This document shows, one piece after another, positions 1-29,900 of a stretch of 34,200 bases of DNA. Below the pieces are notes generated by a model that saw only the letters and a program-made list of their open reading frames with translations, did no database searches and was not told the DNA's origin. The stretch's first letter is position 1; each line of letters opens with the position of its first letter. The stretch lies in contig NW_005434435.1 of the NCBI RefSeq assembly GCF_000315625.1, positions 19,802 to 54,001 of the forward strand, read 5' to 3'. The position numbers were made by a program, and so were the translations under genes. This DNA is from Guillardia theta CCMP2712 (taxonomy: Eukaryota; Protista; Cryptophyta).

Positions 1-3000
1 CAGGCAGCTCCTCCCCGCATGTTCTGTACAAGCATTCCCGCCACTAACCTTCCAAGTGGCCCTCCCGCACTCGCTTCATGCGCGCATGTGCTGCCGTGAT
101 TAAGTCTTCTCCCTCAGCAGCTCCTCCCCCGCATGTCTGTACAAGCATACCCCCACTACCTCCAAGTGACCTCCCTCACTCGCCTCATGCGCGCATGTGA
201 ATATTGTCATTGGTCTTCTCCCTCAGCAGCTCCTCCCCCGCATGTCTCTACAGCATACCCCACTACCTCCAAGTGCCCTCCTGCACTCGCCCACTGCGCG
301 CACGTCCTGCCGTCATTGGCCTTCTCCCTCAGCAGCTCCTCTCCGCATGTCTGTACAGCATACCCCAGCACCTCCAAGTGCCCTCCCGCACTCGCCTCAT
401 GCGCGCACGTCCTGCCGTCATTGGCCTTCTCCCTCAGCAGCTCCTCCCCGCATGTCTCTACAGCATACCGCACTACCTCCAAGTGCCCTCCCCCACTCGC
501 ATAGTGTGCGCATGTCCTGCCGTGATTGGTCTTCTCCCTCAGCAGCTCCTCCCCGCATGTCTCTACAGCATACCGCACTACCTCCAAGTGCCCTCTCAGA
601 CTCGCCCATTGCGCGAATGTTGCGCCATGTTCGTCCTTCGCCCTTAGCAGCTCCTCCCCGCATGTCTTCCCAACATACCGCAGCACCTCCAAGTGCCCTC
701 CCTCACTCGTCAAGTGCGCGCATGTCCTGCCGTCATTGGTCTTCTCCCTCAGCAGCTCCTCCCCGCATGTCTCTACAGCATACCGCACTACCTCCAAGTG
801 CCCTCCCGTACTCGCCTCATGCGCGCATGTCCAGCCGTCATTGGCCTTCTCCCTCAGCAGCTCCTCCCCGCATGTCTGTACAGCATACCGCACTACCTCC
901 AAGTGCCCTCCCCCACTCGCCTCATGCGCGCACGTCCTGCCGTCATTGGCCTTCTCCCTCAGCAGCTCCTCCCCGCATGTCTCTACAGCATACCGCACTA
1001 CCTCCAAGTGCCCTCCCGCACTCGCATCATGCGCGCATGTCCAGCCGTCATTGGCCTTCTCCCTCAGCAGCTCCTCCCNNNNNNNNNNNNNNNNNNNNNN
1101 NNNNNNNNNNNNNNNNNNNNNNNNNNNNNNNNNNNNNNNNNNNNNNNNNNNNNNNNNNNNNNNNNNNNNNNNNNNNNNNNNNNNNNNNNNNNNNNNNNNN
1201 NNNNNNNNNNNNNNNNNNNNNNNNNNNNNNNNNNNNNNAGCATACCGCAGCACCTCCAAGTGCCCTCCCTGACTCGCCTCATGCGCGCATGTCCTGCCGT
1301 CATTGGCCTTCTCCCTTAGCAGCTCCTCCCCGCATGTCTCTACAGCATACCGCACTACCTCCAAGTGCCCTCCCGCACTCGCCGCATTAGGGCATGTCCT
1401 GCCGTACTGGTCCTTCTCCCTCAGCACCTCCTCCCCGCATGTCTCTGCGACATACCGCACTACCTCCAAGTGCCCTCCCGCACTCGCCGCATTAGGGCAT
1501 GTCCAGCCGTCATTGGCCTTCTCCCTCAGCAGCTCCTCCCCGCATGTCTCTGCGACATACCGCACTACCTCCAAGTGCCCTCCCGCACTCGCCGCATGAG
1601 GGCATGTCCAGCCGTCATTGGCCTTCTCCCTCAGCAGCTCCTCCCCGCATGTCTCTGCAGCATACCGCACTACCTCCAAGTGCCCTCCCGTACTCGCCTC
1701 ATGCGCGCACGTCCAGCCGTCATTGGCCTTCTCCCTCAGCAGGCTCCTCCCCGCATGTCTCTACAGCATACCGCACTACCTCCAAGTGCCCTCCCTCACT
1801 CGCCAAGTGCGCGCATGTCCTGCCGTCATTGGTCTTCTCCCTCAGCAGCTCCTCCCCGCATGTCTCTACAGCATACCGCACTACCTCCAAGTGCCCTCCC
1901 GCACTCGCATAGTGTGCGCATGTCCAGCCGTCATTGGCCTTCGCCCTCAGCAGCTCCTCCCCGCATGTCTCTGCAACATACCGCAGCACCTCCAAGTGCC
2001 CTCCCTCACTCGCCAAGTGCGCACATGTCTTGCGATACTCGTCCCTCTCCCTGAGCAGCTCCTCCCCGCATGTCTCTACAGCATACCGCACTACCTCCAA
2101 GTGCCCTCTCAGACTCGCCCATTGCGCGAATGTCGCGCCATGTTCGTCCTTCGCCCTTAGCAGCTGCTCCCCGCATGTCTTCCCAACATACCGCACTACC
2201 TCCAAGTGCCCTCCCTCACTCGCCCAGTGCGCGCATGTCCTGCCGTCATTGGCCTTCTCCCTCAGCAGCTCCTCCCCGCATGTCTCTACAGCATACCGCA
2301 CTACCTCCAAGTGCCCTCCCTCACTCGCCCAGTGCGCGCATGTCCTGCCGTACTCGTCCTTCGCCCTCAGCAGCTCCTCCCCGCATGTCTCTACAGCATA
2401 CCGCACTACCTCCAAGTGCCCTCCCCCACTCGCATAGTGCGCGCATGTCTTTCCGTCATTGGCCTTCTCCCTCAGCAGCTCCTCCCCGCATGTCTGTACA
2501 GCATACCGCACTACCTCCAAGTGCCCTCCCGCACTCACCGCATTAGGGCATGTCCTGCCGTACTGGTCCTTCTCCCTCAGCACCTCCTCCCCGCATGTCT
2601 CTGCGACATACCGCACTACCTCCAAGTGCCCTCCCTCACTCGCCCAGTGCGCGCATGTCCTGCCGTCATTGGCCTTCTCCCTCAGCAGCTCCTCCCCGCA
2701 TGTCTCTGCGACATACCGCACTACCTCCAAGTGCCCTCCCGCACCCGCCAAGTACACGCATGTCCAGCCGTCATTGTCCTTCTCCCTCAGCAGCTCCTCC
2801 CCGCATGTCTCTGCAACATACCGCACTACCTCCAAGTGCCCTCCCTGACTCGCCAAGTGTGCGCATGTCCTGCCGTCATTGATCTTCTCCCTCAGCAGCT
2901 CTCCCGCATGTCTCTGCAGCATACCGCAGCACCTCCAAGTGCCCTCCCTCACTCGCCAAGTGCGCGCATGTGCTGCCGTCATTGTCCTTCTCCCTCAGCA

Positions 3001-3190
3001 CCTCCTCCCCGCATGTCTCTACAGCATACCGCACTACCTCCAAGTGCCCTCCCTTACTCGCCAAGTATGCGCATGTCCCCCCATACACAGCCTTCGCCCT
3101 CAGCAGCTCCTCCCCGCATGTCTCTACAGCATACCGCACTACCTCCAAGTGCCCTCCCTGACTCGCATAGTGCGCGCATGTCTTGCCGAG
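1..3190 (-). repeat. 105-bp tandem array encoding 35-aa ankyrin repeats (>=29 units counted)
   Basis: Recurrent ctcagcagctcctccccgcatgtctctacagcataccgcactacctccaagtgccctccc every ~105 nt; the array runs off the window start. Confidence 0.95.
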
Positions 3191-5550
3191 ATCGTCTTTC
3201 TCCATCATCAAGGTCTTCAGAGTCTCTTTCCCGCATTGTTTCTCTACCGTCTTCAGTACCTCCACATGCCCATACTCCGCCGCCCAGTGCACCATCGACT
3301 TCCCTTTCTTGTCCTTCGCTCCTACCTCTGCTCCTGCCTCTATCAGCTCCCTCACGCTCCCCGCCCTCCCCAGCATCCCCGCTACATGCAGCCCTGTCCT
3401 CCCGTCCTCCGTCCGCTCGTCCATGTCGCATTCGGTCGCCTTCAGCAGCCCGATCAGCTCCCCCTGTCCTCGTACCACCGCCGTCACTGTCGGCGGCTCC
3501 CCGTGCTGGCCCGACCTTGACATCGACAAGCCGTACATCCCGCACAGCCTCTTGCTCTGCTCTCGTCTGCCGTCATCGTCTGCTGGAGTCCGCGAGCTGA
3601 TCTCGTACATCAGACCCGCCATTGTCCTCCAGTACACTGACTGCATCGACTCCTCCGCAAGTGCTTGACATTTGTTTTGTCCCTGAGTGTCTTCGATCCA
3701 GTGCCTGAGCTTATTGATCGCCATGTCCTTGACTCGGTTCGACAGCTCGATCGCCTCCTTGTAGTTTGACTCGTCGTTGTACCAGCCCGACTCCCTCGCC
3801 CTGCTCGCCTCCACCAGCCCCCAGCTCTCCTCCACGATCGACCCCACAAGACCCTGATGGTACTTATAAAATGAATCGTATAATGCTGTCCTGAGCCGCT
3901 CCTGGATCCTCCCCTCCCACCCCCTCACGTCTCGCTCTACCTCCCTCGCCAGGTTCTCCATCAGCCCTACGTACAGCTGCTTCCTCTTCCCCACAAAGTC
4001 CTCGATCGTCAAGCTCATCGTGTTCGCGTTGATCTTCAGCTCCAGCACCTTCACCCGCCTCCCCTCTACCTCCATGTACCGCGGCGTCTTCACCACCTCC
4101 AGGTACGACAGCGGCGGATACAACATCTCCCCCTCCCCCGGATACTGAGACACAAACGTCAAGCTCGCCCCCCGGTCGATCGCCCCGCAGCTGATCTCGA
4201 ACACGATCGACTCTCCCTCCTCCCCGGCGTACTGCATCGCCTTCCTGACGTCTGTCGTCGTGCTCAGCAGCCCGTACTCGACTCCTCCGGACACCCCGAG
4301 CTCGTCCACGTTGAGGAAGCTCTCCGGCAGCCTCATCCCCTTCAGCCCCCTCCACACAACCCGCAGCCCTTCCGGCAGAGGCGTGTGACGAGACAGCTTC
4401 ACGACCCCGCTGACGATGCAGTGGATGGTCGTCGTGTACTTGTTGGGGAGCTTGCTGGAGTCTCGGAGGAGCTCGTTGGGAGCTCGAAGAACAGAGTTGT
4501 ACTTGAAGTACATCGGCCCTGTCATAGCAAGCCTCTTGTCAGCCTTCTCACGCTCTCTTGCTCCTCTTTCCTCCCCCATGCTCCTTCTCCCTCTCTCGCT
4601 ATCTCTCTCTTACCTGTGTAGAGCTGCAGCGCGATCAGCTCCGCCTCCTGTAGCCCCGCCTTGATCGCCGTGTCCAGCCCCTTCAGCTCCTCCATCCCTC
4701 GGATCACCCGCGTCCCGTCCGACAGCCTCCGCCTCCTCTCCGGGTCTGTCACGTTGAGCCACTCCTCCTTGGCTGTCGTCGTGATGTTGTAGTTGCTCGT
4801 CGTGAACGCTTCCTCCGCGTCCTTGCCCTTGCAGTGCTCCTCCTCTATCGCCTTCATCAGCTCCGTCTGAGGTAGCCCGATCCGCTCCATCAGCCCCCCG
4901 TAGTACTCCTCGATCTTCCCGTACACGGCCTCGCGTACCTCCCCGCTGCCTGTACCGTCCGACTCATTCACCGCAAACTTGCTGTTGTGCGACGTCGCAC
5001 CGTCTCCTCCCGCCCGCCCTCCTGCCTCTGCCGGCCTCCTCAGCGCCTCCTCGAGCCTCCTCCCTATCGCCGTCTGCCATAGAGCCGATAGAGCGCTTTC
5101 CGTCATCCCCTGTAGCCCCGCAAGAGGACTCGCCGCGCTCCCGCCGGGGATGCACTCCGCCATGACTCGGAGGATGTTGAGGTCGCCGAGGCTGCTGGTC
5201 TTGCGCTCGAGCTCCCACTCTCTTGCGACTCTGACCTCGTAGTCGTCGTACGAGAGCCTGTCAGGGCTGAGGGCCGACGCGTCGACGCCGAGAGCCATGC
5301 GGAGGTTGTTGAGAATCGTTTTGTATTCCTTTGAGTCTAGAGGGGTCTGAAAGAGCTTCTTGAGGTCAGAGCTGATGTCGTCGGGGATAGTCCAGCTGGT
5401 CGTCTGCTGGGCACTAGCTGGTGGATGAGCCGTGGGATTGCTGATTTGAGCGAGAGCGGAGGTGTGGGCGAGCAGCACTTCATTCTTGACTCTCAAGGTC
5501 AAGAGCTCACGCTCAAGCTCTATGATCTCTCTCTGTACATCCTTCCCCAT
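1..5550 (-). CDS. Mono-ADP-ribosyltransferase (R-S-E/ARTC-like) + long ankyrin-repeat protein, paralog A; 3'-partial; exons 5550-4614 and 4518-<1
   Basis: ATG at 5550 (MGKDVQREIIELERELL, coiled-coil-like). Splicing the GT-AG intron 4613-4519 gives LQLYTG|PMYFKYNSVLR. ART motifs follow: VWRG, LLSTTTD, SQYPGEGEMLYPP (ExE at 4127-4135). Then a helical linker and ankyrin repeats (GRTGLHVAGMLG, GKSMVHWAAEYG, then 35-aa units GxTCAHxASxGGHLEVVRYAVETCGEELLREK). Frameshifts near 2900, 1742 and 238 lie in homopolymer runs; gap at 1079-1238. Confidence 0.85.
1079..1238. other. Assembly gap (160 N) inside the ankyrin array
   Basis: Run of N. Confidence 1.
4519..4613 (-). other. Spliceosomal intron (95 nt) in ART paralog A
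   Basis: Minus strand ACAG|GTAAGA...TGACAG|GGCCGATG; removal restores LYTGPMY; same position in paralog B. Confidence 0.85.
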
Positions 5551-6054
5551 GCCGTACCAGACTAGCAGGAGGGGACAAGGCTCAGCAGATCTCAACGCCT
5601 GTCACAAGCGTCATATCATCGAGAGTTGCTTTGAGGGGTGATTCGATCTTGTTGTCTTCCACAAAAAACTAAGGCTTGTCATCTACACACAGCACAAGTT
5701 TCTCTCCTTAGGACTTTCAGAGAGCTCTAGGACAACACAGTCACAGCTGTGTCATCGCTAATATTCACGAGGATATGAAGGCTTTGATCCCATCATGTGC
5801 CGTGAGCTCTCTGTCCGTAGAGTTACAATCATTTGTTCCCTTGCAAGAATCATTCCACATTCTTAATTATCTCTTCTCTTAACTTCCGTTTTGTTGGAAG
5901 GGAAAGAGGGAAGAATGGCAGTATAACAAAAGGAAAAGCGCATAACGTTTCTAGCTTCCCTCTACTTGCAAACAAGAATGCCAAGAAAACATACAACAAC
6001 CAGACAGGGAATATAATTCCCTCCTCTCATCTCCCTCTTTTTCCCTCCTCTTCT

Positions 6055-7447: not shown

Positions 7448-7732
7448 GGCGGCGCTGCTCGTGGCCGTGGCGCTGGGGTGTGTGAGGGGGGAGGAGTGAA
7501 ACGAACTCTGATCGATCAAACATTCAAGATCCGGAGTTACACACTGTGCGAGCGAGTGCTCAGTGACCCGAGGAGCAGTAATGAGATCAGAGCCGGGAGC
7601 AGCTGAGATCCTCTGATCAGCACACGATGACTCTTGGGACAGACGATGCTCGGCACGAACCAACTTGTCTCTTCGTCTCGGGTCGACGCGCGGCGTCAGG
7701 TGACCGATGGCAGCGTCTCACGCGGGAGAGTG

Positions 7733-7906
7733 GAAGAAGGTGTTGCCAAGACAAACAAGAGTCCGAGCAAAGTGACTCTAGAGCAAGATGGAAGAAGGTG
7801 TTGCCAAGACAAACAAGAGTCCGAGCAAAGTGACTCTAGAGCAAGATGGAAGAAGGTGTTGCCAAGACAAACAAGAGTCCGAGCAAAGTGACTCTAGAGC
7901 AAGATG
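7733..7906. repeat. 58-bp tandem repeat x3
   Basis: gaagaaggtgttgccaagacaaacaagagtccgagcaaagtgactctagagcaagatg at 7733, 7791, 7849; no spacers. Confidence 0.95.
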
Positions 7907-8590
7907 GCGTGATGGGTGCGAGGGAGAGATGCATGGGAGGAGAGAAAGGAAAGCAAGTGATCATTCAATTTATTGACTGAAAAAGAAGGACAAACCGGAG
8001 CAAACAAAGGAGGGGAGGATAGAGCCAACAAATCCGCCTCAATAAAATACTAGGAAACGAAGGAGGCAGCGAAAACCGGCATTCAGGAGGAAGAGGTTGG
8101 AGACCTTGTCTTGTCCAAGGGGAGGATGGATGAAGACATCGGGGGGGTTGGAATCGCGTCCATGAGAGAGGAAAGAGAGTGACTCAGTCGTCATGCTTCT
8201 GATGGTGGTCTTTGATAGCCACGTCAGCGGTCAGCACAAGACCAGATCCATTCCTCAGCACCACCCCCTCACCCACCACAGGGCCGAAGCCACCCCTCCA
8301 CCATAGTCCATACACGCCAACTCTCATTAACGGGTAACCCGGTCCGAGTCACTCGATCCCTTGCCAGAGAAGATCTCGCGAGACATCCTAGTAGCCTATG
8401 ACCTGTCTACACACCCGGGTGCTATCTAGCCTAACAGTCTGACCTGACTACGGGTACTCCTGAGCTCGGTCCTCGGCGTTGAGCCAAGTAGGTTGGCGAG
8501 TGTCTGCCGGTACACTCGGAGGACTGTTTACGAAGCGGTGGCTCTTGCACACAGTCGCTCGGAGCTTGCGGAGTTGTGTGACACTGGAAT

Positions 8591-8621
8591 GAGTTTCAAA
8601 GTCTCAAAGACTTTGAAATTC
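8591..8621. other. Inverted repeat/hairpin 5 nt from the element end
   Basis: gagtttcaaagtct-caa-agactttgaaattc: 11-bp perfect stem, 14 bp with one mismatch; identical at 33371-33401. Confidence 0.85.
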
Positions 8622-8665
8622 TCGGGACTCGACGGGCGGGATTTACCTCACCTAGTTATGAGGCG

Positions 8666-12387: not shown

Positions 12388-15300
12388 TCACTCGGCATCG
12401 CGTCGCTCGAGCACGGACCTGAGCCGTCGGCCCGCCTCAGAAGCACGGGTGTCGGGGATGTTGGGAGGCAAGGCGGCGCCTCGGAGCCGTCGGATGCGTC
12501 GGATGTTGTACGAGTTGTTGCTAGCAAGGCTGCTCAGAGCCTCCATCGCGCTATCCTCCAACCACCCGCTGCCCTCATGCCTTTGCATCGCCCTCACTAC
12601 CGCCTCGATCGCTCCCGCCTCCCGCGCCCGCGCCTGGCTGTCTGCCATGCCCTCTGTCATGCTGCGCAAGGCCTTGCATCCGTCACGCGGTATCCATCGG
12701 TCGCCTGCGTGCGTGGACATGGCGCTGTCGACGGCCTCGATCGCTCCCGCCTCCCGCGCCCGCGCCTGGCTGTCTGCCATGCCCTCCGTCATGCTGCGCA
12801 AGGCCCTGCATGCGTGACACTGTAGCCATCGGTCGTCCACATGTGTGGACATGGCGCTGTCGACGGCCTCGATCGCTCCCGCCTCTCGAGCCCGCGCCTG
12901 GCTGTCTGCCATGCCCTCCGTCATGCTGCGCAAGGCCTTGCATGCGTCACACTGTAGCCATCGGTCGTTAACATGTGTGGACATGGCGCTGACGACGGCC
13001 TCGATCGCTCCTGCCGCCCGCGCCCGCGCCTGGCTGTCAGCCATGCCCTCCGTCATGCTCTCAAGGGCTTCGCATGCTGACCACTGCAAGCACATCTCGT
13101 CTGCGTGCGTGGACATGGCGCTGACGACGGCCTCGATCGCTCCCGCCTCCCGCGCCCGCGCCTGGCTGTCTGCCATGCCCTCCGTCATGCTGCGCAAGGC
13201 CTTGCATCCATCATTTTGTAGCCATTTCTTGTCTGCGTGCGTGGACATGGCACCGACGACGGCCTCGATCGCTCCCGCCTGCATGGCCGGGAGCTTGTTC
13301 TGCTCGTGGCCCTTGGCTATCGCTGTCATCACTTGGCATAGACCTTGCTGTATCTTCGCGTTGCTCTGGTGCCTGGTCATGGCGCTGACGACGGCCTCGA
13401 TCGCTTTCGCATCTCTCGCTGTGCCCTGGTATCGGAAGTACTGCATTGTGTACTTTAGGGCCCAGCACGCAGCCTGCTGCACTTTCAAGTCGTCCGCGTG
13501 CCTATCGAGGCATCTCATGACGGCCTCGATCGCTCCCGCCTCCCGCGCCCGCGCCTGACTCTCATCCCTGAAGCTGATAGTGTTGTCCAGGGCCTCGCAC
13601 GCAGCTTGCTGTACCCCCGCGTGGTCTGCATGCGTGGACATGGCGCTGACGACGGCCTCGATCGCTCCCGCCTCTCGTGCCCGCGCCTGGCTCTCTTCGA
13701 TGTGATCGACTATATGCTTCAGTGCCCAGCAAGCAGCTTGCTGTACCCCCGCGTCGTCCGCGTGCGTGGACATGGCGCTGACGACGGCCTCGATCGCTCC
13801 CGCCTCTCGTGCCCGCGCCTGGCTCTCATCTCTGAAGCTGATAGTGTAGTCCAGGGCCTCGCACGCAGCCTGCTGTACCCCCGCGTGGTCTGCATGCGTG
13901 GACATGGCGCTGACGACGGCCTCGATCGCTCCCGCCTCCGACGCCCGCGCCTTGCTCTTTTTGATGAAACTGACGGTATGTCGCAGGGCCCAGCACGCAG
14001 CCTGCTGTACCCCCGCGTCGTCCGCGTGCGTGGTCATGGCGCTGACGACGGCCTCGATCGCTCCCGCCTCTCGCACCATGACTTTGTCAGCCTACCCGTT
14101 CCGAGCCATGCTGACCAAGGCTTCGCACGCAGCTTGCTGTACCTCCGCGAGAGCCTCGTACGTCCTCATCTCCTGCATCACCGCCTCTATGCTGTCGTCA
14201 GCTCCCGTCCTCAGCAGCCTCCATGCCTCCCTTGCCGGCTGCCCTACCGCTGCCGACGCCCCGACCGGCAGCGCCTGAGCTCTCGTCCTCAGCGAGCTGA
14301 GAGCGTCGCTGCCCGTGGACTCCAAGGCGGTGCAAGCTGACCCTTGCAGCTCCACGAGCTCTGCGTACTTGCGCTTCCTGACTCTCCTCGCCACCGCCTT
14401 GACACCTCCCCCCGCTGCCTCTCCGATCCTTCTCCTACCTCGGCATAGCGACTGGTTGCCGGCCCCTGCCCGCTGCTGTCCAGGCGTCCTGTCTGACCCT
14501 GTCCATGCAGCAGCCCCCTCACCCCCCTCCGCTCCGGCTCTTCCTACAGCTACCGCAAGCTCGGCGAACCTCGGGCGGTCCTCCTCCCTCGTCGCCCAGC
14601 AGCTCTCCAGCAAGGCCCACAACCCGTCCGGGCATCTTCCGAGGAGGTGCTCTCGAGGCAGCCTCCCACCCCCGCACACGTACCCGATCACAGTCGGGTC
14701 CGTCATGGGGTAGTAGGGGGTCATGCCCGAGGTCAGGATCTCCCAGCACGTGACCCCGTAGGCCCACACGTCGCTCTTCTCCGAGCACCGGCCTCTCTGC
14801 ATCGACTCTGGGGGCATGTAGCGCACCGGCAGCGCTCGCCCCGCTACCCTCCCGTCACTCTCGTCCACCAGCTCCCCTGCCCGCCCGTACCCCGCCACCT
14901 TCACCGACGTCCTCCCCACGTCCTCCTTGTCGAAGCCCATGACCAGCACGTGCCGAGCCGCGAGGTCCCGGTGCACGACCCGCTGCTCAGCCAGGTGCTC
15001 CATGCCCTGCGCGATCTGCTCCATCATCGCCGTCTGGTGCCCTCGCGTCACCTGCCCCGCCAGCCTCCCCAGCAGAGCCTCTCTCAGCGACCCCAGCTCG
15101 GCGAGCTCGGTCAGCAGCAGGGGACAGCCGTCGGCGTCCTGGCTCTGCCCCATGTAGCGTACAAGCCGAGGATGCGGCCCGAGCTGAGCATGACCGCGGC
15201 TTGTCTGCCGCCGTCGTCTTGCATGAGCTTGAGCACGGCTACCTTGATCTTGCCGGGCCCTGCCCTCCTTCCTTGCACGCGGAGGTGACCTATGTAGAGG

Positions 15301-15596
15301 GTCTGGGAGGAGCCTGCTGTGATAGGCTGCCCCTCCATCTCCACGTCGTGGCTGGGGACGAGCAGCGCGTGTCGCTCCTGCCACTCCTGGATGGCGCTGC
15401 GGAGAGCGAGGTTGGGTACAAGGTGGTTAGAGGGGAGGAGGACGCCGGTGAGGGGGCTGGAGAGACGATGGCGGAGCCAGGTCTCGATGGAGGATCTCTG
15501 GTAGGTGTGGCCATCGCAGCAGGTGACAGGGTCGGTCATGAGCGCCATGCTGATGGGGCAGAAGAAGGACCGTAGCGCTCCCTGGTCCGCTGCCAT
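12388..15596 (-). CDS. U-box + tyrosine-kinase-like (pseudo)kinase + armadillo-repeat protein; one frameshift (~15186) and one in-frame TAG (14092-14094), possible pseudogene
   Basis: ATG 15596; U-box FFCPISMALMTDPVTCCDGHTYQRSSIETWL...SPLTG...LVPNLALRSAIQEW. Kinase motifs VAVLK, HPRLV, HRDLAARHVLV, VAGYG, LPVRYMPPE, SDVWAYGVTCWE, CW...DRPRF. ARM repeats EAGAIEAVVSAMSTH..D..VQQAAC.AL. ORFs 14092..15384 and 12388..14079 are in the same frame across the TAG (ARNG*ADKVMVREAG). Confidence 0.8.
12530..14200 (-). repeat. 132-bp tandem array encoding 44-aa armadillo repeats (13 units)
   Basis: gcctcgatcgctccc recurs at 14051, 13919, 13787 and onward down to ~12602. Confidence 0.9.
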
Positions 15597-15635
15597 GGCG
15601 GGGCAGAGGAGCGAGGGGAGGTGAAGGGAGGGGAT

Positions 15636-15872
15636 AGGGGGGTACGTGCAGCGAGGGAGAGAGGGGGTGCGAGGCCGGTCTAGGGAGGGGTAGGGGGTGG
15701 TAGGAGGAGGGGAGAGGAGGGAGGAGGGGTGGTCCAAAAAAGAAAAGGGAGTGTAAAACTAAAAAAAAGAAGGATATGTCTTGTTGCTGCCTTTTGTGTG
15801 CGATGGTATCTTGCGGGTATGTGTTGTTGCTGCCTTTTGAGCATTTGGTACTGATGGTCTGAGGCGGATGGC
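15636..15872. repeat. G-rich dispersed repeat, copy 1, immediately upstream of the U-box gene
   Basis: ggggtacgtgcagcgaggga...ggccggtctagggaggggtagggggtggta...ggtccaaaaaagaaaag...cttgttgctgccttttgtgtgcgatggtatctt matches 18761-19062. Confidence 0.9.
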
Positions 15873-16303: not shown

Positions 16304-17822
16304 ATGCTGACGGTTGCTTCTTTATGGTTTGCCAGTGCAATGAAGCATGAAGCAAGCAAGGCTTTCGAGGGACGTGCGGAGCGGAGAGCAAACGGCACGA
16401 CAGGTAGAGGTCCGCAGTTGCCTGATCGTGAGAAACAAGACAATCAAAGTCGGTTTGCATGGAGTCATGACCGGTCACACACGAAGAAAAGGCAGGCAGA
16501 TGTCGCAGGAAACGAGATCGAGATCGCGAGGGCATCCAAGTTAGTCGACCAGACAGCCAAAAGCTTGTCGTTGCGCAAGAGAGAGGCTGAGCTGAAGGAG
16601 GCTGAGGTCACAGGAGACGAGATCGAGATCGCAGACGCCCTCCTGAGAGTCAGGGAGGCAGAGCTGGAGGAGGCTGAGGTCACAGGAGACGAGATCGAGA
16701 TCGCGAAGGCACGCAAGTTAGTCAACAAGGCATGGCTAAGCTTGTCGTTGCGCAAGAGAGAGGCTGAGCTGGAGGAGGCTGAGGTCACAGGAGACGAGAT
16801 CGAGATCCTCAAGGCACGAATCAGGGTCAGGGAGGCAGAGCTGGAGGAGGCTGAGGTCACAGGAGACGAGATCGAGATCCTCAAGGCACGAATCAGGGTC
16901 AGGGAGGCAGAGCTGGAGGAGGCTGAGGTCACAGGAGACGAGATCGAGATCCTCAAGGCACGAATCAGGGTCAGGGAGGCAGAGCTGGAGGAGGCTGAGG
17001 TCACAGGAGACGAGATCGAGATCGCAGAGGCCCTTCTTGCCCTCAGGATGGCAGAGCTGGAGGAGGTTTGGCTGAGAGGAGGCCAGATAAAGTTCGAAAG
17101 GGCAGTCGAGCTAGCCAGGCAGGCAAGCATAAGCTTGTCGTTGCTCAGGAGGACGGCAGAGCTGAAGGAGATTGAGGACACAGGAGACGAGATCGAGATC
17201 GCAAAGGCGCGTTCCAGACTGACACAAGCAGAGCTTGACGAGGCGAAGATCAAAGGAGACAAGATTAAGATTGCAGGGGCATATCTCAAGTACAGGAAGA
17301 CATACCTCGATATGATTCAAGTCACAGGAGACGAGATCAAGATCGCAGACGCCCTCCTGACAGTCAGGAAGCAGAGCTGAGGAGGCTGAGGACACAGGAG
17401 ACGAGATCGAGATCGNNNNNNNNNNNNNNNNNNNNNNNNNNNNNNNNNNNNNNNNNNNNNNNNNNNNNNNNNNNNNNNNNNNNNNNNNNNNNNNNNNNNN
17501 NNNNNNNNNNNNNNNNNNNNNNNNNNNNNNNNNNNNNNNNNNNNNNNNNNNNNNNNNNNNNNNNNNNNNNNNNNNNNNNNNNNNCGAGATCGCGAGGGCA
17601 TCCAAGTTAGTCGACCAGGCATGGTTGCGCACGAGAGAGGCTGAGCTGAAGAAGGCTGAGGACACAGGAGACGAGATCGAGATCGCAGACGCCCTCTTTA
17701 GCGTCAGGGTCGCAGAGCTGAAGGAGGCTGAGGACACAGGAGACGAGATCGAGATCGCGAGGGCATCCAAGTTAGTCAACCAGGCATGGCTAAGCTTGTC
17801 GTCGCACAAGAGAGAGGCTTAG
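16304..17822 (+). CDS. Acidic alpha-helical (TPR-like) tandem-repeat protein of unknown function; spans a gap; start and end uncertain
   Basis: Units REAELEEAEVTGDEIEILKARIRV (24 aa, 72 bp) and REAELEEAEVTGDEIEIAKARKLVNKAWLSLSLRK (35 aa, 105 bp) on both sides of gap 17416-17584. Single-base losses near 17370-17380; degenerate repeats continue past the TAG at 17820 to ~17999. Confidence 0.65.
17416..17584. other. Assembly gap (169 N)
   Basis: Run of N. Confidence 1.
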
Positions 17823-18760: not shown

Positions 18761-19062
18761 AGGGGGTACGTGCAGCGAGGGAGCGAGGGGGTGCGAGGCC
18801 GGTCTAGGGAGGGGTAGGGGGTGGTACGAGGAGGGGAGAGGAGGGAGGAGGGGTGGTCCAAAAAAGAAAAGCTAATCCTACCAGCGGCTACGGGGGGAGT
18901 GTAAAACCCAAAAAAAAGAAGAAGTCTTGTTGCTGCCTTTTGTGTGCGATGGTATCTTGTGGGTATGTGTTGTTGCTGCCTTCTGTGTGAGATGGTATCT
19001 TCCGGGTATGTCTTGTTGCTGCCTTTTGTGCATTTGCTGCTGATTGGCTGAGGCGGGTGGCT
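18761..19062. repeat. G-rich dispersed repeat, copy 2, with one extra internal ~44-bp unit
   Basis: Matches 15636-15872; ttgttgctgcctt occurs three times here versus twice in copy 1. Confidence 0.9.
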
Positions 19063-21661: not shown

Positions 21662-24224
21662 CTAGTAGATCCTGCACAGGCTCGTCCCGCTCGAGCGACA
21701 CATCGGGCATGACCTAGACGTCGCTGCCTCCTTGCAGTCCCCGCACAGACACTTGTGACCGCAGGGGACCAGCGCCCATTCAGCTCTTCGATCCATGCAG
21801 ACGACGCATGGCTGCCCGCGCTCTCCGACGGCATCATCGTATCGCTGCTGAAGCTTCTTCCGCAGCTCGCTGAAGCTCGGCCGCTCCTTGATCTTCTCCC
21901 GCCAGCACTCTCGCATGATGGCATACACTGCTGGAGGGCATGCAGCAGGAGCCGCTAGTCGCTCCCCGTCCACAACCTTGGGTCCTACAAGCTCATCGTC
22001 GGTGATGGCCCAGTAAGGGACTTTGCCGTAAGTCCAGACCTCCCACAGCGTCACCCCGAACGCCCACACGTCGCTCTTCTCCGAGTAGCGATGTCTCAGC
22101 AAGCTCTCCGGCGCCATCCATCGCGCCCGTCCAGCCCTCGAGCCTGCCGAGCTCTCGCTCCCTACCCGACTCACTCCGTCACCGCGCCAGCCCATGATCC
22201 ATCGCCCGTAGTCGGCTACCTTGACCCTCACCCCGAGGTGATCCTGCCCTTGCAGACTCCAGACAAGCACGCTCCTCGCCGCCAGCTCCCGGTGTACAAC
22301 ATCGTGCAGCGACAGCTGCTCCATCCCGTCGCAGATCTGCCTCGCCACCTCCAGCTGCACCAGCTCGCCCATCGTCTCCTCCTCCTCCGCGAAGCTGTGC
22401 AAGGTCCTCTCGAGAGAGCCCTGGCAAGCGTACTCAGTCACCAGGCAGTAGTCGCCAGAGCTTGGCTCGACGGTGACGGCAAGGAGGCCAAGCAGGCTGC
22501 GGTGACGGCCCAGCTGGTGCCAGGTCTTGACCTCCTGCTCGAGAGCTTGTCTGCTGGCAGTGGCTCTGCTGCCTCGGATACGTAGGATGGCCACGTCAGC
22601 GGTGCTGGCGTGCGGCTGCCGCCAGCGAGCCTTGTAGATGAGCTTGGAGGAGCCTGAGCCGACCTGACGACTGTCGACCAGGCTGTCGTAGTCCACCGAT
22701 GGCACGCTTCCCAGCTGGAGACGAGAGGATCACGTCAGTCATCGACCCTCGTTAAGACACAAACAGGACCTGAGCAACAGCGCCATGCTGGTTGTCGTCG
22801 TCAGACGCCTGCTGCTCCGCGTCTCTCTGCTGGCGCTGGCGCTTGCGCTTCTTGCTCTTGTCGCTTCTACACCTCTCACGTCGCTCGATCCCCTCCTGCG
22901 CTGGCTTGACGCTGCGTTGCAGTGCCGCTGACAGAAGCTCCCCGCTCCATAGCCGCCGCATCCAGCCCTCTATCTTGCTCGCCAGCTCCTCGTCCTGCCT
23001 CTCTCGCGCTGCCTCCGCCGCTGTTCGTCCCAGCGAGTCTCGCAGCTGCCCGAGCTCTCCGCCCCCGACCTCCAGCAGCCTCTCACAGACAGACCAGACG
23101 CCTCGCGCCGCCGCTACGTGCAGCGCCGAGCCATCAGACTCCGTGACACACTTGATAGACATGCAGTTCACCCAAGCACTATGACCTTGTAGACCACTAT
23201 GAGCTCGTACACCTAACTCAAGACAAGCCTTCTGCGTCATGCTTCCAAGGTCCCACACCCTCAAGGTACTCATCCCACTCCCGCTGACAGCCGTCTTGCC
23301 GTCCTCGCTGATTGCCACGCTCGTCACCCAACCACTATGACCCTCAAGACAAGCCTTCTGCTTCATGCTCACAAGGTCCCACACCCTCATCGTCTCATCG
23401 TTACTCCCGCTGACAGCCGTCTTGCCGTCCCCGCTGATCGCCACGATCCCTACCGCTTTACTATGACCCTCAAGACGAGCCTTCTGCGTCATGCTCCCAA
23501 GGTCCCACACCCTCAGCGTCTTATCGTCACTCCCGCTGACAGCCGTCTTGCCGTCCTCGCTGATTGCCACGCTCCATGCGCACTCACTGTTATCTTCAAG
23601 ACGAGCCTTCTGCGTCATGCTCCCAAGGTCCCACACACTCAAGGTTCTAGACCAGCTCCCGCTGACAGCCGTCTTGCCGTCCCCGCTGATTGACACGCTG
23701 TTGATCGGACCACCATCACCCTTAAGACAAGCCTTCTGCGTCATGCTCGCAAGGTCCCACACCCTCAACGTTTCATCGTCACTCCCGCTGACAGCCGTCT
23801 TGCCGTCCTCGCTGATCGCCACGCTCCATGGCGTACTCCTATGACCCTCAAGACAAGCCTTCTGCGTCATGCTCCCAAGGTCCCATACCCTCAGCGTCTC
23901 ATCCCAGCTCCCGCTGACGGCCGTCTTGCCGTCCCTGCTGATCGCCACACTCGTCACCCAGTGATTATGACCCTCAAGACAAGCCTTCTCCTCCATGCTC
24001 CCAAGGTCCCACACCCTCAGCGTCTTATCCCAGCTGCCGCTGACTATGGTCGTGACTCTCGCTGGTCCTACTGGATGCTTCTGCTTCAGTCGCTCTGCTC
24101 CTGCACTCACGGCCAGCGCTCTCACTTGGACCTCATCTCCTCTCTCGATCGCTTCGATCAGCTGCAGCCGCTTCCTCTCGTCCTCCTCCATCCTTTTCCG
24201 CTCGTCGTCGGAGACCTGGCTCAT
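21662..24224 (-). CDS. Ankyrin/WD40 + tyrosine-kinase-like pseudokinase + C3HC4 RING protein, 835 aa; exons 24224-22770 and 22714-21662
   Basis: ATG 24224; WD40 units LEGH...V.SVAIS.DGKTAVSGS.D.TLRVWDL; ankyrin motifs SALHVAAARG and GRTAAEAA. A 55-nt phase-0 GT-AG intron joins the two ORFs in frame. Kinase motifs GSGSS, VAILR, HRELAARSVLV, DYG, RWMAPE, SDVWAFGVTLWE; RING CVVC...PCGHKCLCGDC...CPMCR. Confidence 0.88.
22715..22769 (-). other. Spliceosomal intron (55 nt)
   Basis: CAG|GTCCTG...ACTGAC (branch-point-like)...CTCTCGTCTCCAG|CTG; contains the in-frame TAA that ends the upstream ORF. Confidence 0.8.
23150..24050 (-). repeat. 126-bp tandem array encoding 42-aa WD40 repeats (6 full + 2 complementary partial = 7 blades)
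   Basis: ccgctgacagccgtcttgccgtc and aaggtcccacaccctca recur every 126 nt. Confidence 0.92.
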
Positions 24225-26765
24225 CCTCCTCCTTGCTCGTCCCTCAGCCCCAGCACAAGAACCTCTTGTTCTCCTTCGCTCCTCTCGTCTCCTCTCTTTC
24301 TATCGCTTCTCTCTCCTTCTCTCTCCCTCACATCACCTGACCTCTCCCTTCCCTCTCCCTTCCCTTCTCTTTCCCTCCCCTCGATCCTCTCCTCTTCCTC
24401 TGCTTATCCTACCGAGCTCTGTCAGGACCCCTCCTTTCTCCCTCCCTCCCCCCCCCCACCCCACTCCCTTGCCCTCAACCCCCTGGATCTAGGGGGTGGT
24501 ACGAGGAGGGGAGAGAAGGTAGGGGGCTGGGGGGTGTTCCAACTAATCCTACCAAAGAGGCTGGGGGGGAGGGAGGGGTGGAGGAGCAAGGGGCGGGAGG
24601 GGGTGGTGGGGTGGGATCGAGAGTTCAACCCTCTTTCTCATTGAGGGTCACGTTGTCCTCCCGGCTGCACTACAAGGGCCCGGGCCCGTGGAATGTCCCG
24701 GCCCGGGCCCCGGGCCCGGTCTCTCAGTGACGTTGCCACGGTCCTAGGGTCTTGAGCCTCCGAGGCTCCGGTGACTTGATTGACATGGGGCAGACAGCCA
24801 GGCGTCAGCCGGGAGACGGACAGGTGGAGGAGAAGCAGGAGAAGCTGACACAGTGAGAGATGGTACAGCTGGAGCTGAGAGGTGAAGGAGGCGAGAGAGG
24901 ACCTCGAGGACATGAGGCTGCAACAAGATGAGGCACCAACAACCTGCAATGATCGGCGTAAGAAGGCATGCCGATGGGGGTAGGAGCTGGAAGGCTTGAC
25001 AGAGCTCGGTCATGCGAGTACGCTTTCAATAAGGCATCAAACATGCTTCACAAAGTCCAGCTGCACATGCCACCGTAGCAACTTCCAGCTGCATGCCTGC
25101 TGTCCTCCACCATACAGCAGAGAGCATCCCCGGCCAGCCTCCCCCCACCAGCACCCCAGCACAAGCCCTGGCTACCTCTCGAGCTGCTGGGCACATGCCT
25201 CCGTCTCGCTCCTCGGCGGCCTGATCCCAGCAGCCTCTCGAGCTCGAGCAGGCCTTATGTCGGATTGTGAGTACCTTCCCAACCTAGAGCTTTAAGGGAA
25301 GGAGCCTGCTGGGAAACGAGAATGCGGCAAAAGGTTGGAGTTGTTAGTAAAGAGAGAAGCGGCAAGAGGAGGAGAAGGGGGAGGAGCAGGAGAAGTAGCG
25401 GGTGGAGAGGAAGAGAGGGAGGAGAGAAGGAGCGGGAGGAGCGGGAGAAGCAGGAGGATCGGGAGGAGGAGCTGCACCTTCCTCTCAGCGAGCTCTTCAA
25501 TGTGCTCCGAGCAGGTCTCGTGAGGGAGACCATGAAGGCTGTATCGCACAAGTTCCATACACTCGCACGATCCTTCGGAAGGGGGTTGACAGACATTCTG
25601 TCTATATCCTTCAAGGTGATCAAGGGGCTCAACGCTTGTTGGAACATATCCTTGAGCAGCATGACGCAGAGGGATCGCAGGACTTGCATGTCTTTGATGC
25701 TGTTGCTGTTCAACCTAGTGACAACCTCCTCAATGTTGATCTTGCAAGTCACGACGTTCTGCATACTTGTTGCATGTCCTCAGGATGGTCACACGTTCTT
25801 GCAAACGAGGAGGGTCACTTCTCCTGGTATGCCGGGCTCTCATATGCCGCGGCTTGCAGCACTTCAAAGTAAGGAGGAACCGTTCGATCATGCACGTCAA
25901 CGATCGACTGCTTCAGCAAGACTTGAGGGATCCTTTGCTAGTGGCGCGCTTATCCTGAGGTGGGGACGGGGGGGGATTCTATGTGAACGGGGGGGATTCC
26001 ATAGTTCCGCGGATGACAACACCCCTATCGCCGTTGTCCACAACATGGTTGAGCACCAGCAAGACGATGCGCATGGGGTCAAGGACGGGAGGAGGAGGGG
26101 AGAGGAGGTGCAGGAGGGGAGGATTAGACTCGTATCATGTGAGAGAAGCTTGAGAAAGGTTGGCGCTTATCCTTCCTCGTTCGCTCCTCCCCTCGTCAGG
26201 TCTCGCCAGTGTCCCCGCAGACCCATCCTGTCATCTCCACGCGCCTCATCTTCGGGAGGCACGGGCCGGGGGTAGAGATAACTGTAAGGACAGAGGGGGG
26301 TGGTGGGGTCATGTCCGTGCGGGGGTGATGTAGGGCCGGAAGTTAACCAGACTCGATGGGGAGACAGGGGTGGGTGGTGGTCTTTAGGTCAGATGTCGAT
26401 AGGGGTGGGGGTGGGGGTTCATTTGAGTGCCAGAGCAGGGGGAGATGTAGGCATCTGGCTGAGCCAGAAGTTCTTACAGACGCAAGAAGTTCAGGGCTAG
26501 CTTCCTTTCAGGTGGTGGAGCCAAGCGCGGCATAGGGCTTGGAGCTTAGGATGTGACTTACGAGATTGACGGACTGGGTGAGGGGGCGCTGGAGAAAAGG
26601 GTGTCGACGTGGAAGCGAGGGGACTCGGCATTGTGGAGACAGGAAGGAGAAAGGGAGCTGCTGGTGTTGGTTGCTGTGTCTGATCCTGAGAATGAACTGC
26701 TGGTGGTTGTGTTGGGAGTCTGGAGAGACTCATTGTGAAGTGCCGAAGCCGTGTGGTGTAGTCAG

Positions 26766-26982: not shown

Positions 26983-29900
26983 CTACTCGATACCTAAACT
27001 TGTAAGATACTCCTGAACTGACATGTCCCAAGCATAAGCAGCGCATGTCTTGCCGTCATTGTCTTTCTCCCTCAGCAGCCCCTCCCCGCACCTCTCCGCC
27101 AAGTACCGCATAACCTCCAAGTGCCCTCCAGCACTCGCCGAGTGCGCGCATGTCTGGCCATCAATTTTCTTCTCGCTCAGCAGCCCCTCCCCGCACCTCT
27201 CCGCCAAGTACCGCATAACCTCCAAGTGCCCTCCAGCACTCGCCAAGTGCGCGCATGTCCAGCCGCCAATTTTCTTCTCCCTCAGCAGCCCCTCCCCGCA
27301 CGTCTCCGCCAAGTACCGCAAGACCTCCACATGCCCTGCCTTGCTCGCCGCATGCGCGCATGTCGTGCCGGCTTTGGTCTTCTCGCTAAGCAGCCCCTCC
27401 CCGCACCTCTCCGCCAAGTACCGCACGACCGCCAAGTGCCCTCCCTCACTAGCCAAGTGCGCGCATGTCTGGCCGCCCAAGTCCTTCTCGCTCAGCAGCC
27501 CCTCCCCGCACCTCTCCGCCAAGTACCGCAGCACCTCTAAGTGCCCTCCAGCACTCGCCAAGTGCGCGCATTTCTGACCGCCCAAGTCCTTCTCGCTCAG
27601 CGGCCCCTCCCCAAACCTCTCCGCCAAGTACCGCAGCACCTCCAAGTGCCCGCCCTCACTCGCCCAGTGCGCGCATGTCCTGCCATAATTGTCCTTCTGC
27701 CTCAGCAGCTCCTCCCCGCACCTCTCCGCCAAGTACCGCACTACCTCCACATGCCCTCTCACACTCGCCAAGTGCGCGCATGTCTGGCCGTCACTTTTCC
27801 ACTCGCTCAGCAGCTCTACCCGACATTGCTCCTCAACAGCCTCCAGCACCTTCACATGCCCATACTCCGCCGCCCAGTGCATAAAGGTCCTGCCTCCCTC
27901 ATCCTTCGTTCTTACATCTGCTCCTGCCTCGATTAGCTCCCTCACGCTTCCCGCCCTCCCCAGCATCCCCGCTACATGCAGCCCTGTCCTCCCGTCCTTC
28001 ATCCGCTCGTCCATGTCGCATCCGCCCGCCTTCAGCAGCCCGATCAGCTCCCCCTGTCCTCGTACCACCGCCGTCACTGTCGGTGGCTCCCCGTCCCCGT
28101 CCAACCTTGAGATCGACAATGCATACATCCCACACAGCCTCTTGCTCAGCTCGGCTCCCTCCTCAGCATCGGCTACACTTCTCTTGTCCATCTTGTGCCG
28201 CAACCTCGCCATCGTCTTCCAGTACACTGACTGCATCGGCTCGTCCGCAATATCTCGACATTTAAGGTCTCCTTGTGTGTCTTCGATCCAGTGCCTGAGC
28301 TTGTTGATCGCCATCTCCTTCACGCGGTTCGACACCTCGATCGCCTCCTTGTAGTTTGACTCGTCGTTGTACCACTCCGCCTCCCTCCCCCTGCTCGCTC
28401 CACCAGCCCCCAGCACTCCTCACGATCGATTGTACAGACCCTGATGATACTTGTACGATGAGTCCCATGGCGCTGTNNNNNNNNNNNNNNNNNNNNNNNN
28501 NNNNNNNNNNNNNNNNNNNNNNNNNNNNNNNNNNNNNNNNNNNNNNNNNNNNNNNNNNNNNNNNNNNNNNNNNNNNCAGCCGCTCCTGGATCCTCCCCTC
28601 CTCCCCTCTCAGGTCTCGCTCTACCTCCCTCGCCAGGTTCTCCATCAGCCCTACGTACAGCTGCTTCCTCTTCCCCACAAAGTCCTCGATCGTCAAGCTC
28701 ATCGTGTTCGCGTTGATCTTCAGCTCCAGCACCTTCACCCGCCTCCCCTCTACCTCCCTGTACCGCGGCGTCTTCACCACCTCCAGGTACNNNNNNNNNN
28801 NNNNNNNNNNNNNNNNNNNNNNNNNNNNNNNNNNNNNNNNNNNNNNNNNNNNNNNNNNNNNNNNNNNNNNNNNNNNNNNNNNNNNNNNNNGGATACAGCA
28901 CGACCGCAGGAACTCGTTCTTGCTATCACAAACGTCAAGCTCGCCCCCCGGTCGATCGCCCCGCAGCTGATCTCGAACACGATCGACTCTCCCTCCTCCC
29001 CGGCGTACTGGATCGCCGTCCTGACGTCTGTCGTCGTGCTCAGCAGCCCGTACTCGACTCCTCCGGACACCCCGAGCTTGTCCTCGTTGAGGAAGCTCTC
29101 CGGCAGCCTCATCCCCTTCAGCCCCCTCCACACCCGCAGCCCCTCCGGCAGAGGCGTGTGACGAGACAGCTTCACGATGCCGCTGACGATGCAGTGGATG
29201 GTCGTCGTGTACTTGTTGGGGACCTTGTTGGAGTCTTGGAGGAGCTCTTTGGGAGCTCGAAGAACAGAGTTGTACTTGAAGTACATCGGCCCTGTCATAG
29301 CAAGCCTCTTGTCAGCTATCTCACGCTCTCTTGCTCCTCTCTCCTCCCCCATGCTCCTTCTCCCTCTCTCTCGCTATCTCTCTCACTTACCTGTGTAGAG
29401 CTGCAGCGCGATCAGCTCCGCCTCCTGTAGCCCTGCCTTGATCGCCGTGTCCAGCCCCTTCAGCTCCTCCATCCCTCGGATCACCCGCGTCCCGTCCGAC
29501 AGCCTCCGCCTCCTCTCCGGGTCTGTCACGTTGAGCCACTCCTCCTTGGCTGTCGTCGTGATCCCGTAGTTGCTCGTCGTGAACGCTTCCTCCGCGTCCT
29601 TGCCCTTGCAGTGCTCCTCCTCTATCGCCTTCATCAGCTCCGTCTGAGGTAGCCCGATCCGCTCCATCAGCCCACCGTAGTACTCCTCGATCTTCCCGTA
29701 CACGGCCTCGCGTACCTCCCCGCTGCCTGTACCGTCCGACTCATTCACCGCAAACTTGCTGTTGTGCGACGTCGCACCGTCTCCTCCCGCCCGCCCTCCT
29801 GCCTCCGCCGGCCTCCTCAGCGCCTCCTCGAGCCTCCTCGCTATCGCCGTCTGCCATAGAGCCGATAGAGCGCTCTCCGTCATCCCCTGTAGCCCCGCAA

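Follow-up and report, generated by a model that had tools for sequence, protein, structure and literature searches.

What is a block of near-identical repeats doing at the end of a cryptophyte scaffold, and why do its units, alike in most respects, differ over and over at the same few codons? The question is raised by positions 1-3190 of a 34,200-nt stretch, analysed as a whole and called the window, with which scaffold JH993203.1 of Guillardia theta CCMP2712 (GCA_000315625.1) ends; a preliminary description had proposed at least 29 ankyrin repeats there, varying at the positions that face a ligand. The reading towards which we lean is that the repeats constitute the expanded solenoid of an ADP-ribosyltransferase (ART)-ankyrin gene of the receptor-effector kind, in which diversity along the groove of the solenoid has been favoured by selection.

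Tandem Repeats Finder (TRF) reports a 105-nt period with 29.8 copies over positions 4-3188, and an anchor scan of the minus strand locates 30 unit starts, the first at 3268 and the last at 58. Read on that strand, the period translates into 35-residue ankyrin repeats, preceded by units of other lengths:

1..3151, minus strand: 29 tandem 105-nt units, i.e. 35-residue ankyrin repeats (TRF, anchor scan, Pfam, AlphaFold)
3152..3268, minus strand: transitional ankyrin unit of 39 residues (117 nt), leading from the canonical repeats into the 35-residue array
3269..3481, minus strand: pair of canonical 33-residue repeats with which the ankyrin domain begins at its N-terminal end (Pfam)

The proposed minimum of 29 repeats is therefore matched by 29 units of 35 residues and one transitional unit, and 23 of the 29 are intact, being open and exactly 105 nt long. 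Membership in the Pfam clan Ank is significant, with Ank_2 giving E=3.7e-66 over units 4-14 and 4.2e-32 on the second array segment; Ank_2 and Ank also match the two 33-residue repeats at residues 367-444 of the open reading frame (ORF) 2879-4579. An AlphaFold model of units 4-13, with a predicted local distance difference test (pLDDT) score of 96.2 and a predicted template modelling (pTM) score of 0.90, adopts a stacked helix-turn-helix-loop solenoid, and its best match among solved structures in Foldseek is the ten-repeat ankyrin domain of Espin1, 5et1 (TM 0.84/0.88, root-mean-square deviation 2.1 Å), followed by ankyrin-1, ankyrin-B and designed ankyrin repeat proteins (DARPins). Taking the H of GHLEVV as codon 1 of the unit, DSSP assigns in this model an outer helix to codons 2-12, an extra short helix to codons 14-18, a β-turn loop to codons 19-26 and an inner helix to codons 27-34; the extra helix would account for the two additional residues of a 35-residue unit as compared with a canonical one of 33.

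The 23 intact units, from which all variation statistics were derived, are distinct in DNA, with a mean pairwise identity of 88% at the nucleotide and 77% at the amino acid level. Per-codon entropy of the aligned units peaks in the β-turn loop and the inner helix, as the preliminary description would have it, with amino acid maxima at codons 21, 22, 23, 25, 29, 30 and 33. The seven account for 57% of pairwise nucleotide differences (71% together with codons 8-10), and amino acid identity is 36% at them versus 87% at the other 28. All of the listed variants were recovered, including AND, TND, DEH, DQY, DEY, DND, AVY and TNH followed by G-[RWKAGS] in the β-turn, HE, HY, HL, HW, HD, QW, YL and NA in the helix, and A, G, E, Q, T, K or L after AS. 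The multi-nucleotide swaps to aromatic or charged codons are equally real: about half of the differing codon pairs at the seven sites are two or three bases apart, and non-consensus residues there are enriched in E, W and Y. The description of the scaffold as almost invariant fits the high identity elsewhere but is too strong for codons 8-10 of helix 2, which alternate between AVE, VAE, VGK, AVQ and AAE; the swaps at codons 8-9 (AV/VA/VG/AA) look like volume-conserving core variation in the outer helix. The states of loop and helix occur in 19 distinct combinations among the 23 units. Codon 30, the most variable of all, takes the states TTG, TGG, TAT, GAG and GCG, nearly all of them one step from a stop, and the majority base of each of its columns spells TAG, but no unit has a stop there. 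Base-specific targeted mutagenesis, resembling that of diversity-generating retroelements, was considered and rejected, since all four bases change at the variable codons.

Do these codons correspond to sites at which ankyrin repeats touch their ligands? In HMMER alignments to consensus-designed ankyrin proteins (e.g., 4hb5), unit codons 21-35 coincide with canonical ankyrin positions 1-15, so that the variable set becomes canonical 1, 2, 3, 5, 9, 10 and 13. In the modelled unit, the loop contains codons 21-25, and a single turn of the inner helix separates codons 29/30 from codon 33; C27, A28, A31 and S32, small and conserved, occupy the opposite helix face, as packing would predict. The positions chosen for DARPin libraries from co-crystal contacts are 2, 3, 5, 13, 14 and 33, and the most variable ones in 15,497 natural repeats, according to Magliery and Regan, are 2, 3, 5, 13, 14, 17, 32 and 33 (PMC1261162). 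Four of our seven (2, 3, 5 and 13) are thus among the six DARPin positions (hypergeometric p=0.011), and the resemblance extends to the constant, consensus-like scaffold and to the placement of those four on the concave face. The correspondence that had been drawn with the DARPin positions holds for these four, in the loop and the inner helix, but fails at positions 14 and 33, which are constant in the array, and 1, 9 and 10 vary in addition. Moreover, DARPins are designed, and exist as populations of binders with two or three modules, whereas the array is natural, has a 35-residue unit with the extra short helix, and strings 29 or more different modules into one chain. Sequence comparison supports the view that the variable sites are ligand-contact sites of ankyrin repeats; the evidence does not reach as far as a "natural library" or a "recognition code".

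To see how the variable codons evolve, changes were counted by parsimony on a tree of the intact units:

Seven variable codons: 51 nonsynonymous changes over 17.5 sites, 8 synonymous changes over 3.5 sites
25 scaffold codons: 20 nonsynonymous changes over 56.2 sites, 17 synonymous changes over 18.8 sites
Whole unit: 81 nonsynonymous changes over 80.3 sites, 28 synonymous changes over 24.7 sites

The nonsynonymous rate at the variable codons is about 2.6 times the array-wide synonymous rate (omega ~2.6, Poisson p=4e-9) and 3.1 times the rate at synonymous sites outside the seven codons (conditional binomial p=6e-6), while omega is 0.31 for the scaffold. Nei-Gojobori pairwise values agree, with a dN of 0.49 at the variable codons and a dS of 0.09 and dN of 0.04 in the scaffold. 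A uniform neutral model, combining free sites with even homogenisation, is rejected. The diversifying selection suggested earlier is upheld against the synonymous rate of the array, where nonsynonymous variation is indeed the higher, but much less so within the variable codons themselves, where it is only 1.3 times the synonymous rate. Selection for diversity and deep, protected polymorphism at the seven codons cannot be told apart with these data. It could also be argued that the seven positions are simply unconstrained surface residues, and that concerted evolution makes the scaffold seem frozen. The omega of 1.3 within the variable codons, which is not clearly above 1, and the variability of the same positions in ankyrin repeats generally would agree with such a view, which we nevertheless consider unlikely, as homogenisation should erase neutral differences and the nonsynonymous rate at these codons is a multiple of the synonymous rate elsewhere; nor does it sit well with so many codon pairs differing at two or three bases, or with replacements rich in W, Y and E.

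The nature of the protein that carries the solenoid becomes apparent further along the minus strand, where the gene begins:

4613..5550, minus strand: exon 1, comprising a coiled-coil-like N-terminus, a stretch that matches no Pfam family, and the first part of the ART domain; putative start codon at 5550
4518..4612, minus strand: 95-nt GT..AG intron, with the joint 4517>4613 in RNA contigs
4024..4517, minus strand: exon-2 part of the R-S-ExE ADP-ribosyltransferase domain, recognised by invariant motifs and by the Pfam matches of the paralogue P0017
3527..4003, minus strand: helical linker from the ART to the ankyrin domain (AlphaFold model 2, residues 171-330, pLDDT about 90)

The intron (4612-4518) is removed in contigs of runs X7 and X10, and exon 2, beginning inside the R-S-ExE domain, runs from 4517 into the array. 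The catalytic motifs (Arg, Ser-Thr, Glu-x-Glu) align to those of HopU1, and R56, S85-T86, Q124 and E128/E130 are invariant in 13 homologues. Exon 2 alone scores 15 and 12.6 bits against ART (PF01129) and ADPrib_exo_Tox (PF03496), below the cut-offs, because the intron splits the domain; P0017, a 62%-identical G. theta paralogue, exceeds both cut-offs with 31 and 25.7 bits. The second AlphaFold model, comprising ART, linker and ankyrin (ANK) repeats, has low confidence in its ART part because exon 1 was left out.

The presence of an enzyme at the other end of the polypeptide bears on what the length of the array may be for. Solenoids of 24-29 repeats, those of ankyrin-1/ankyrin-B and NOMPC, are among the structural matches, and their comparable length would be in keeping with a mainly mechanical or scaffolding role, as a spring or spacer of the kind found in channel solenoids, to which the variation would be incidental. 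We give this idea hardly any credence, in view of the concentration of variation at groove positions, its nonsynonymous excess, and a fusion partner that is an enzyme rather than a channel or cytoskeletal module.

The array of 29 or more units may be translated as a single protein, a prediction that hinges on two internal frameshifts. Five of the 29 units carry indels, and the array is also interrupted by a gap:

2900..2905 (about), minus strand: two bases fewer than consensus in the G-rich run of unit 3
1741..1743, minus strand: insertion of one base in unit 14, at the corresponding G-rich stretch
1079..1238, no strand: assembly gap of 160 N within a unit
1..275, minus strand: units 27-29, in which single-base doublings accumulate on approaching position 1

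There is evidence that translation has mattered for the array. The intact units contain no stop, versus 4.8 expected among the 109 inferred changes (P=0.008), given that 4.4% of single-base changes from the consensus create one; codon 30 avoids the stop that its column majorities spell; and the pattern of change is identical in the segment preceding the first frameshift, in that between the two shifts and in that beyond the gap. All indels are confined to one G-rich part of the unit and to a contig end of degrading quality, which counts in favour of sequencing error: those of units 27-29 look like artefacts of a low-quality contig end, abutting the 1097-N gap that immediately precedes window position 1, and we infer that the two internal frameshifts are sequencing errors as well. 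Read evidence comes from Logan contigs of short-read runs, 1130 of the 1770 placed contigs fitting two places. One contig of run X7, which must be an RNA run since it also contains the spliced mRNA form, does not have the extra base at 1741, but it could originate from a paralogue.

If the frameshifts were real, the product would be a short protein, with the ART and about six ankyrin repeats, and at least 26 downstream units would be left untranslated, as a tail that died recently or as a store of silent cassettes. The stop at 2876, downstream of the -2 nt site, would be in accord with this, as would the 4-9 units that family members normally have and the annotated 573-aa gene model, which spans window positions 1242-3376 and needs introns across the region, evidently to bridge the breaks. 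We think this improbable, though it deserves to be taken seriously: the absence of stops, the scaffold omega of 0.31 and the unchanged pattern of variation downstream of each shift all speak against it, the indels cluster in a G-run prone to sequencing compression, and the insertion at 1741 is missing from the RNA-run contig.

The assembly itself calls for scrutiny, its breaks having been left as they stand throughout the analysis. Sequence flanking the 160-N gap ends at unit nucleotide 24 and restarts at unit nucleotide 38, so that continuity requires 13+105k missing nucleotides; as 160 fits no k, the gap length must be an estimate and the apparent in-frame read-through coincidental. As repeat type and strand agree between the two flanks, the array most likely runs on across the gap, with at least one unit missing. 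The 1097-N gap leaves the C-terminal end of the array gene unassembled. The sequence on its far side was tried as the 3' flank of the gene and rejected, being a short dispersed element (L002 1-166); three copies of it occur in the window, at 24413-24592, 18816-18865 and 15692-15741, with 77-92% identity. In a DNA run, the summed contig depth of the array far exceeds that of the unique part, indicating that the unit is multi-copy in the genome. This multiplicity, the gaps beside and within the array, the contigs with two placements and the fact that the nearest relatives among units are non-adjacent might be taken to mean that the array is largely an assembly product, in which reads from several paralogous loci were collapsed or chimerically joined. 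Such an origin is in our estimation very unlikely, as the 23 units are all distinct and at 88% mean identity differ enough for Sanger reads to order them; in any case, the units and their pattern of variation would be real sequence even if their order were wrong.

How, then, did so long an array arise? Nearest relatives among the units are usually not neighbours, as exemplified by units 6 and 17, 13 and 22, and 20 and 25 (one difference each) and 10 and 23 (four differences). A higher-order repeat was sought and dismissed, as near-identical unit pairs are scattered at offsets of 4-13 units with no consistent spacing. The non-adjacent relatives and the 19 combinations of states fit unequal exchange and short-tract conversion within the array, and part of the arrangement may possibly be due to mis-joining in the assembly.

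A second copy of the gene in the same window provides a comparison:

26983..30474, minus strand: gene B, a paralogue of the same architecture, with nine repeats of the 35-residue type (seven complete) and an intact C-terminal cap

The C-terminal end of both gene B and P0017 is a distinct capping repeat, and six of the seven variable positions of the array are among the most variable in gene B. Genes A (the array gene) and B are segmental duplicates (window positions 3100-5450 versus 27702-30239), as are their upstream regions at 7494-8626 and 32043-33406, which are 96-98% identical and contain a 58-nt tandem repeat in 3.1 copies in one and 7.1 in the other. Within the genes, identity is 96-98% in the N-terminal and ART part and 82.6% in the linker and first ankyrin repeats, a drop that would be expected if the recognition end diverges faster; it is as if either that end were diverging faster or the enzyme end had been homogenised. 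The same plan of ART, linker and 35-residue ankyrin repeats is present in Hanusia phi, Baffinella and environmental sequences, with 4-9 fairly divergent units, and from sequence the array gene appears to belong to a cryptophyte-specific family. Word-index protein searches with the array and with the ankyrin part of P0017 returned nothing above 38% identity other than P0017, and an exact 30-mer scan of Joint Genome Institute (JGI) metagenome contigs gave no match. No other long array of the same unit was found in annotated proteins, a negative weakened by length limits and by the possible absence of this genome's own protein models. Several freshwater, runoff or aquatic metagenome-labelled runs (X6, X17-X20) contain 31-46% of sampled words from positions 2700-5600; G. 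theta is a marine strain, and these matches may reflect related cryptophytes or spiked/control DNA.

Comparison with known systems shows that the closest kind is represented by the highly internally conserved (HiC) ANK, TPR and WD repeats of fungal proteins resembling NOD-like receptors (NLRs), NOD being the nucleotide-binding oligomerization domain. Variable and positively selected sites in their ANK repeats are concave, situated on inner helices and on the β-hairpin (Dyrka et al. 2014, PMC4986451), and the alignment, secondary structure and nonsynonymous excess suggest the same for the G. theta array. The two share near-identical tandem ankyrin units with hypervariable sites in the β-hairpin and inner helix, and signs of both diversifying selection and unit shuffling. 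HiC repeats are defined by >85% identity across at least 100 residues, whereas the array averages 77% at the amino acid level, with single unit pairs at 97-99%. Unlike the fungal NLR arrays, it comes without a NOD and from a cryptophyte host, and its 35-residue unit variant, in an unusually long copy, is fused directly to a toxin-type R-S-ExE ART as the N-terminal enzyme. In an exhaustive HMMER search, the 150 best matches were giant ankyrin proteins whose identity to the array does not exceed 41%; many of them (P0115, P0117, P0142, P0147 and others) are themselves near-identical arrays, 70-90% identical at a lag of 33-35 residues. NACHT/NPHP3_N proteins carry several of these, and the NACHT-ANK and HeLo-NACHT-ANK proteins (P0117, P0142) show variation at the same places, in some cases with a period of 35 residues. 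The number of such arrays among the best matches implies that they are widespread.

In tankyrase, ankyrin clusters recruit substrates for an ADP-ribosyltransferase. Tankyrase may accordingly be viewed as the nearest functional analogy, in logic rather than descent: it combines both activities in one polypeptide, and its ankyrin repeat cluster 5jhq is among the fold matches. Yet its catalysis is of the H-Y-E, PARP type, as opposed to the R-S-ExE toxin/ecto-ART type of the array gene, its domain order is reversed, and its repeats are not near-identical. Among algae, the candidate ROCO-LRR and NB-ARC-TPR receptors of Ectocarpus form a family with diversifying selection in the repeat domain and reshuffled repeat units (Zambounis et al. 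2012, PMC3341825), in which they resemble the array; there, each repeat is an exon and exons are shuffled, whereas the array is a single uninterrupted exon, of another repeat type and with other partner domains. Transcription activator-like effectors (TALEs) likewise have long arrays of near-identical 33-35-residue units that differ at a few defined residues, but their fold is different and their ligand is DNA; the array has seven variable sites per unit.

The favoured scenario can now be stated in full. A gene on the minus strand at 1-5550 would encode, in order, a coiled-coil N-terminus, an R-S-ExE mono-ADP-ribosyltransferase, a helical linker and an ankyrin solenoid, whose growth to 29 units or more probably came about through unequal crossing-over and gene conversion. 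The same two processes would keep the scaffold near-identical in DNA, while differences persist at the seven positions lining the groove of β-turn and inner helix, where variety at contact positions would be favoured by selection. The solenoid would most likely select the target or ligand for the ART domain: the groove may bind a protein or extended peptide and present it for ADP-ribosylation, in the manner of tankyrase, or it may sense a ligand and release the enzyme, in the manner of an immune or allorecognition receptor-effector.

Several points weigh against this scenario. Gaps bound the array, and the assembly lacks its C-terminal cap; the assembled frame stops at 2876, after three long units, and shifts a second time at 1741-1743; no contig covers the first frameshift or spans the 160-N gap, and RNA-run contigs over array units may come from paralogues. 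Synonymous change inside the seven codons is raised as well, hence their low internal omega, and recombination among units violates the tree assumption behind the change counts. The exposure of the variable residues is a deduction from alignment, DSSP and helix periodicity. Finally, neither NACHT, NB-ARC nor any other NOD or switch domain was detected by Pfam (E<0.01) in exon 1, exon 2 or gene B.

The neighbourhood contains further repeat genes. At 12388-15737, on the minus strand, a U-box, a kinase domain of Tyr/Ser-Thr type and about 11 near-identical armadillo repeats are distributed over consecutive ORFs; the armadillo units are 44 residues long (132-nt period, 76% matches), and only a few positions differ between them, as in the ankyrin array. 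At 21662-24224, also on the minus strand, a kinase domain and a RING finger come after 6.6 copies of a near-identical WD40 repeat with a 126-nt period (82% matches), making this the third repeat-array gene with an effector inside the same 34 kb. An ORF on the plus strand at 16304-17380 is composed of tandem repeats of 72/144/177 nt in which E, A and I are abundant (motif EAELEEAEVTGDEIEI); it is coiled-coil-like in appearance and interrupted by a gap at 17416-17584. A more far-reaching idea, decidedly speculative in our judgement, is that cryptophytes possess a NOD-less receptor-effector repertoire, in which near-identical ankyrin, WD40 and armadillo cassettes, shuffled inside loci as well as from one locus to another, would re-aim ART, kinase and E3-ligase effectors, and long out-of-frame arrays of the present type might act as silent stores from which expressed copies are converted.

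Animals, plants and fungi have well-described diversified repeat receptors, and such receptors have been proposed in brown algae. Our literature search found no description of a cryptophyte ART-ankyrin family or of comparable diversified repeat receptors in cryptophytes. The locus is a concrete cryptophyte candidate, in which a toxin-type ART is joined directly to a long, groove-variable ankyrin solenoid, and it lies in a 34-kb cluster with near-identical WD40 and armadillo arrays fused to kinases and E3 ligases. Should the frameshifts prove real, it would exemplify the expansion and death of such arrays. Should the array be translated, it would offer protein engineers a natural 35-residue ankyrin scaffold of interest, and would provide a testable system for the choice of ADP-ribosylation targets in a unicellular alga, be it in defence, allorecognition or regulation.

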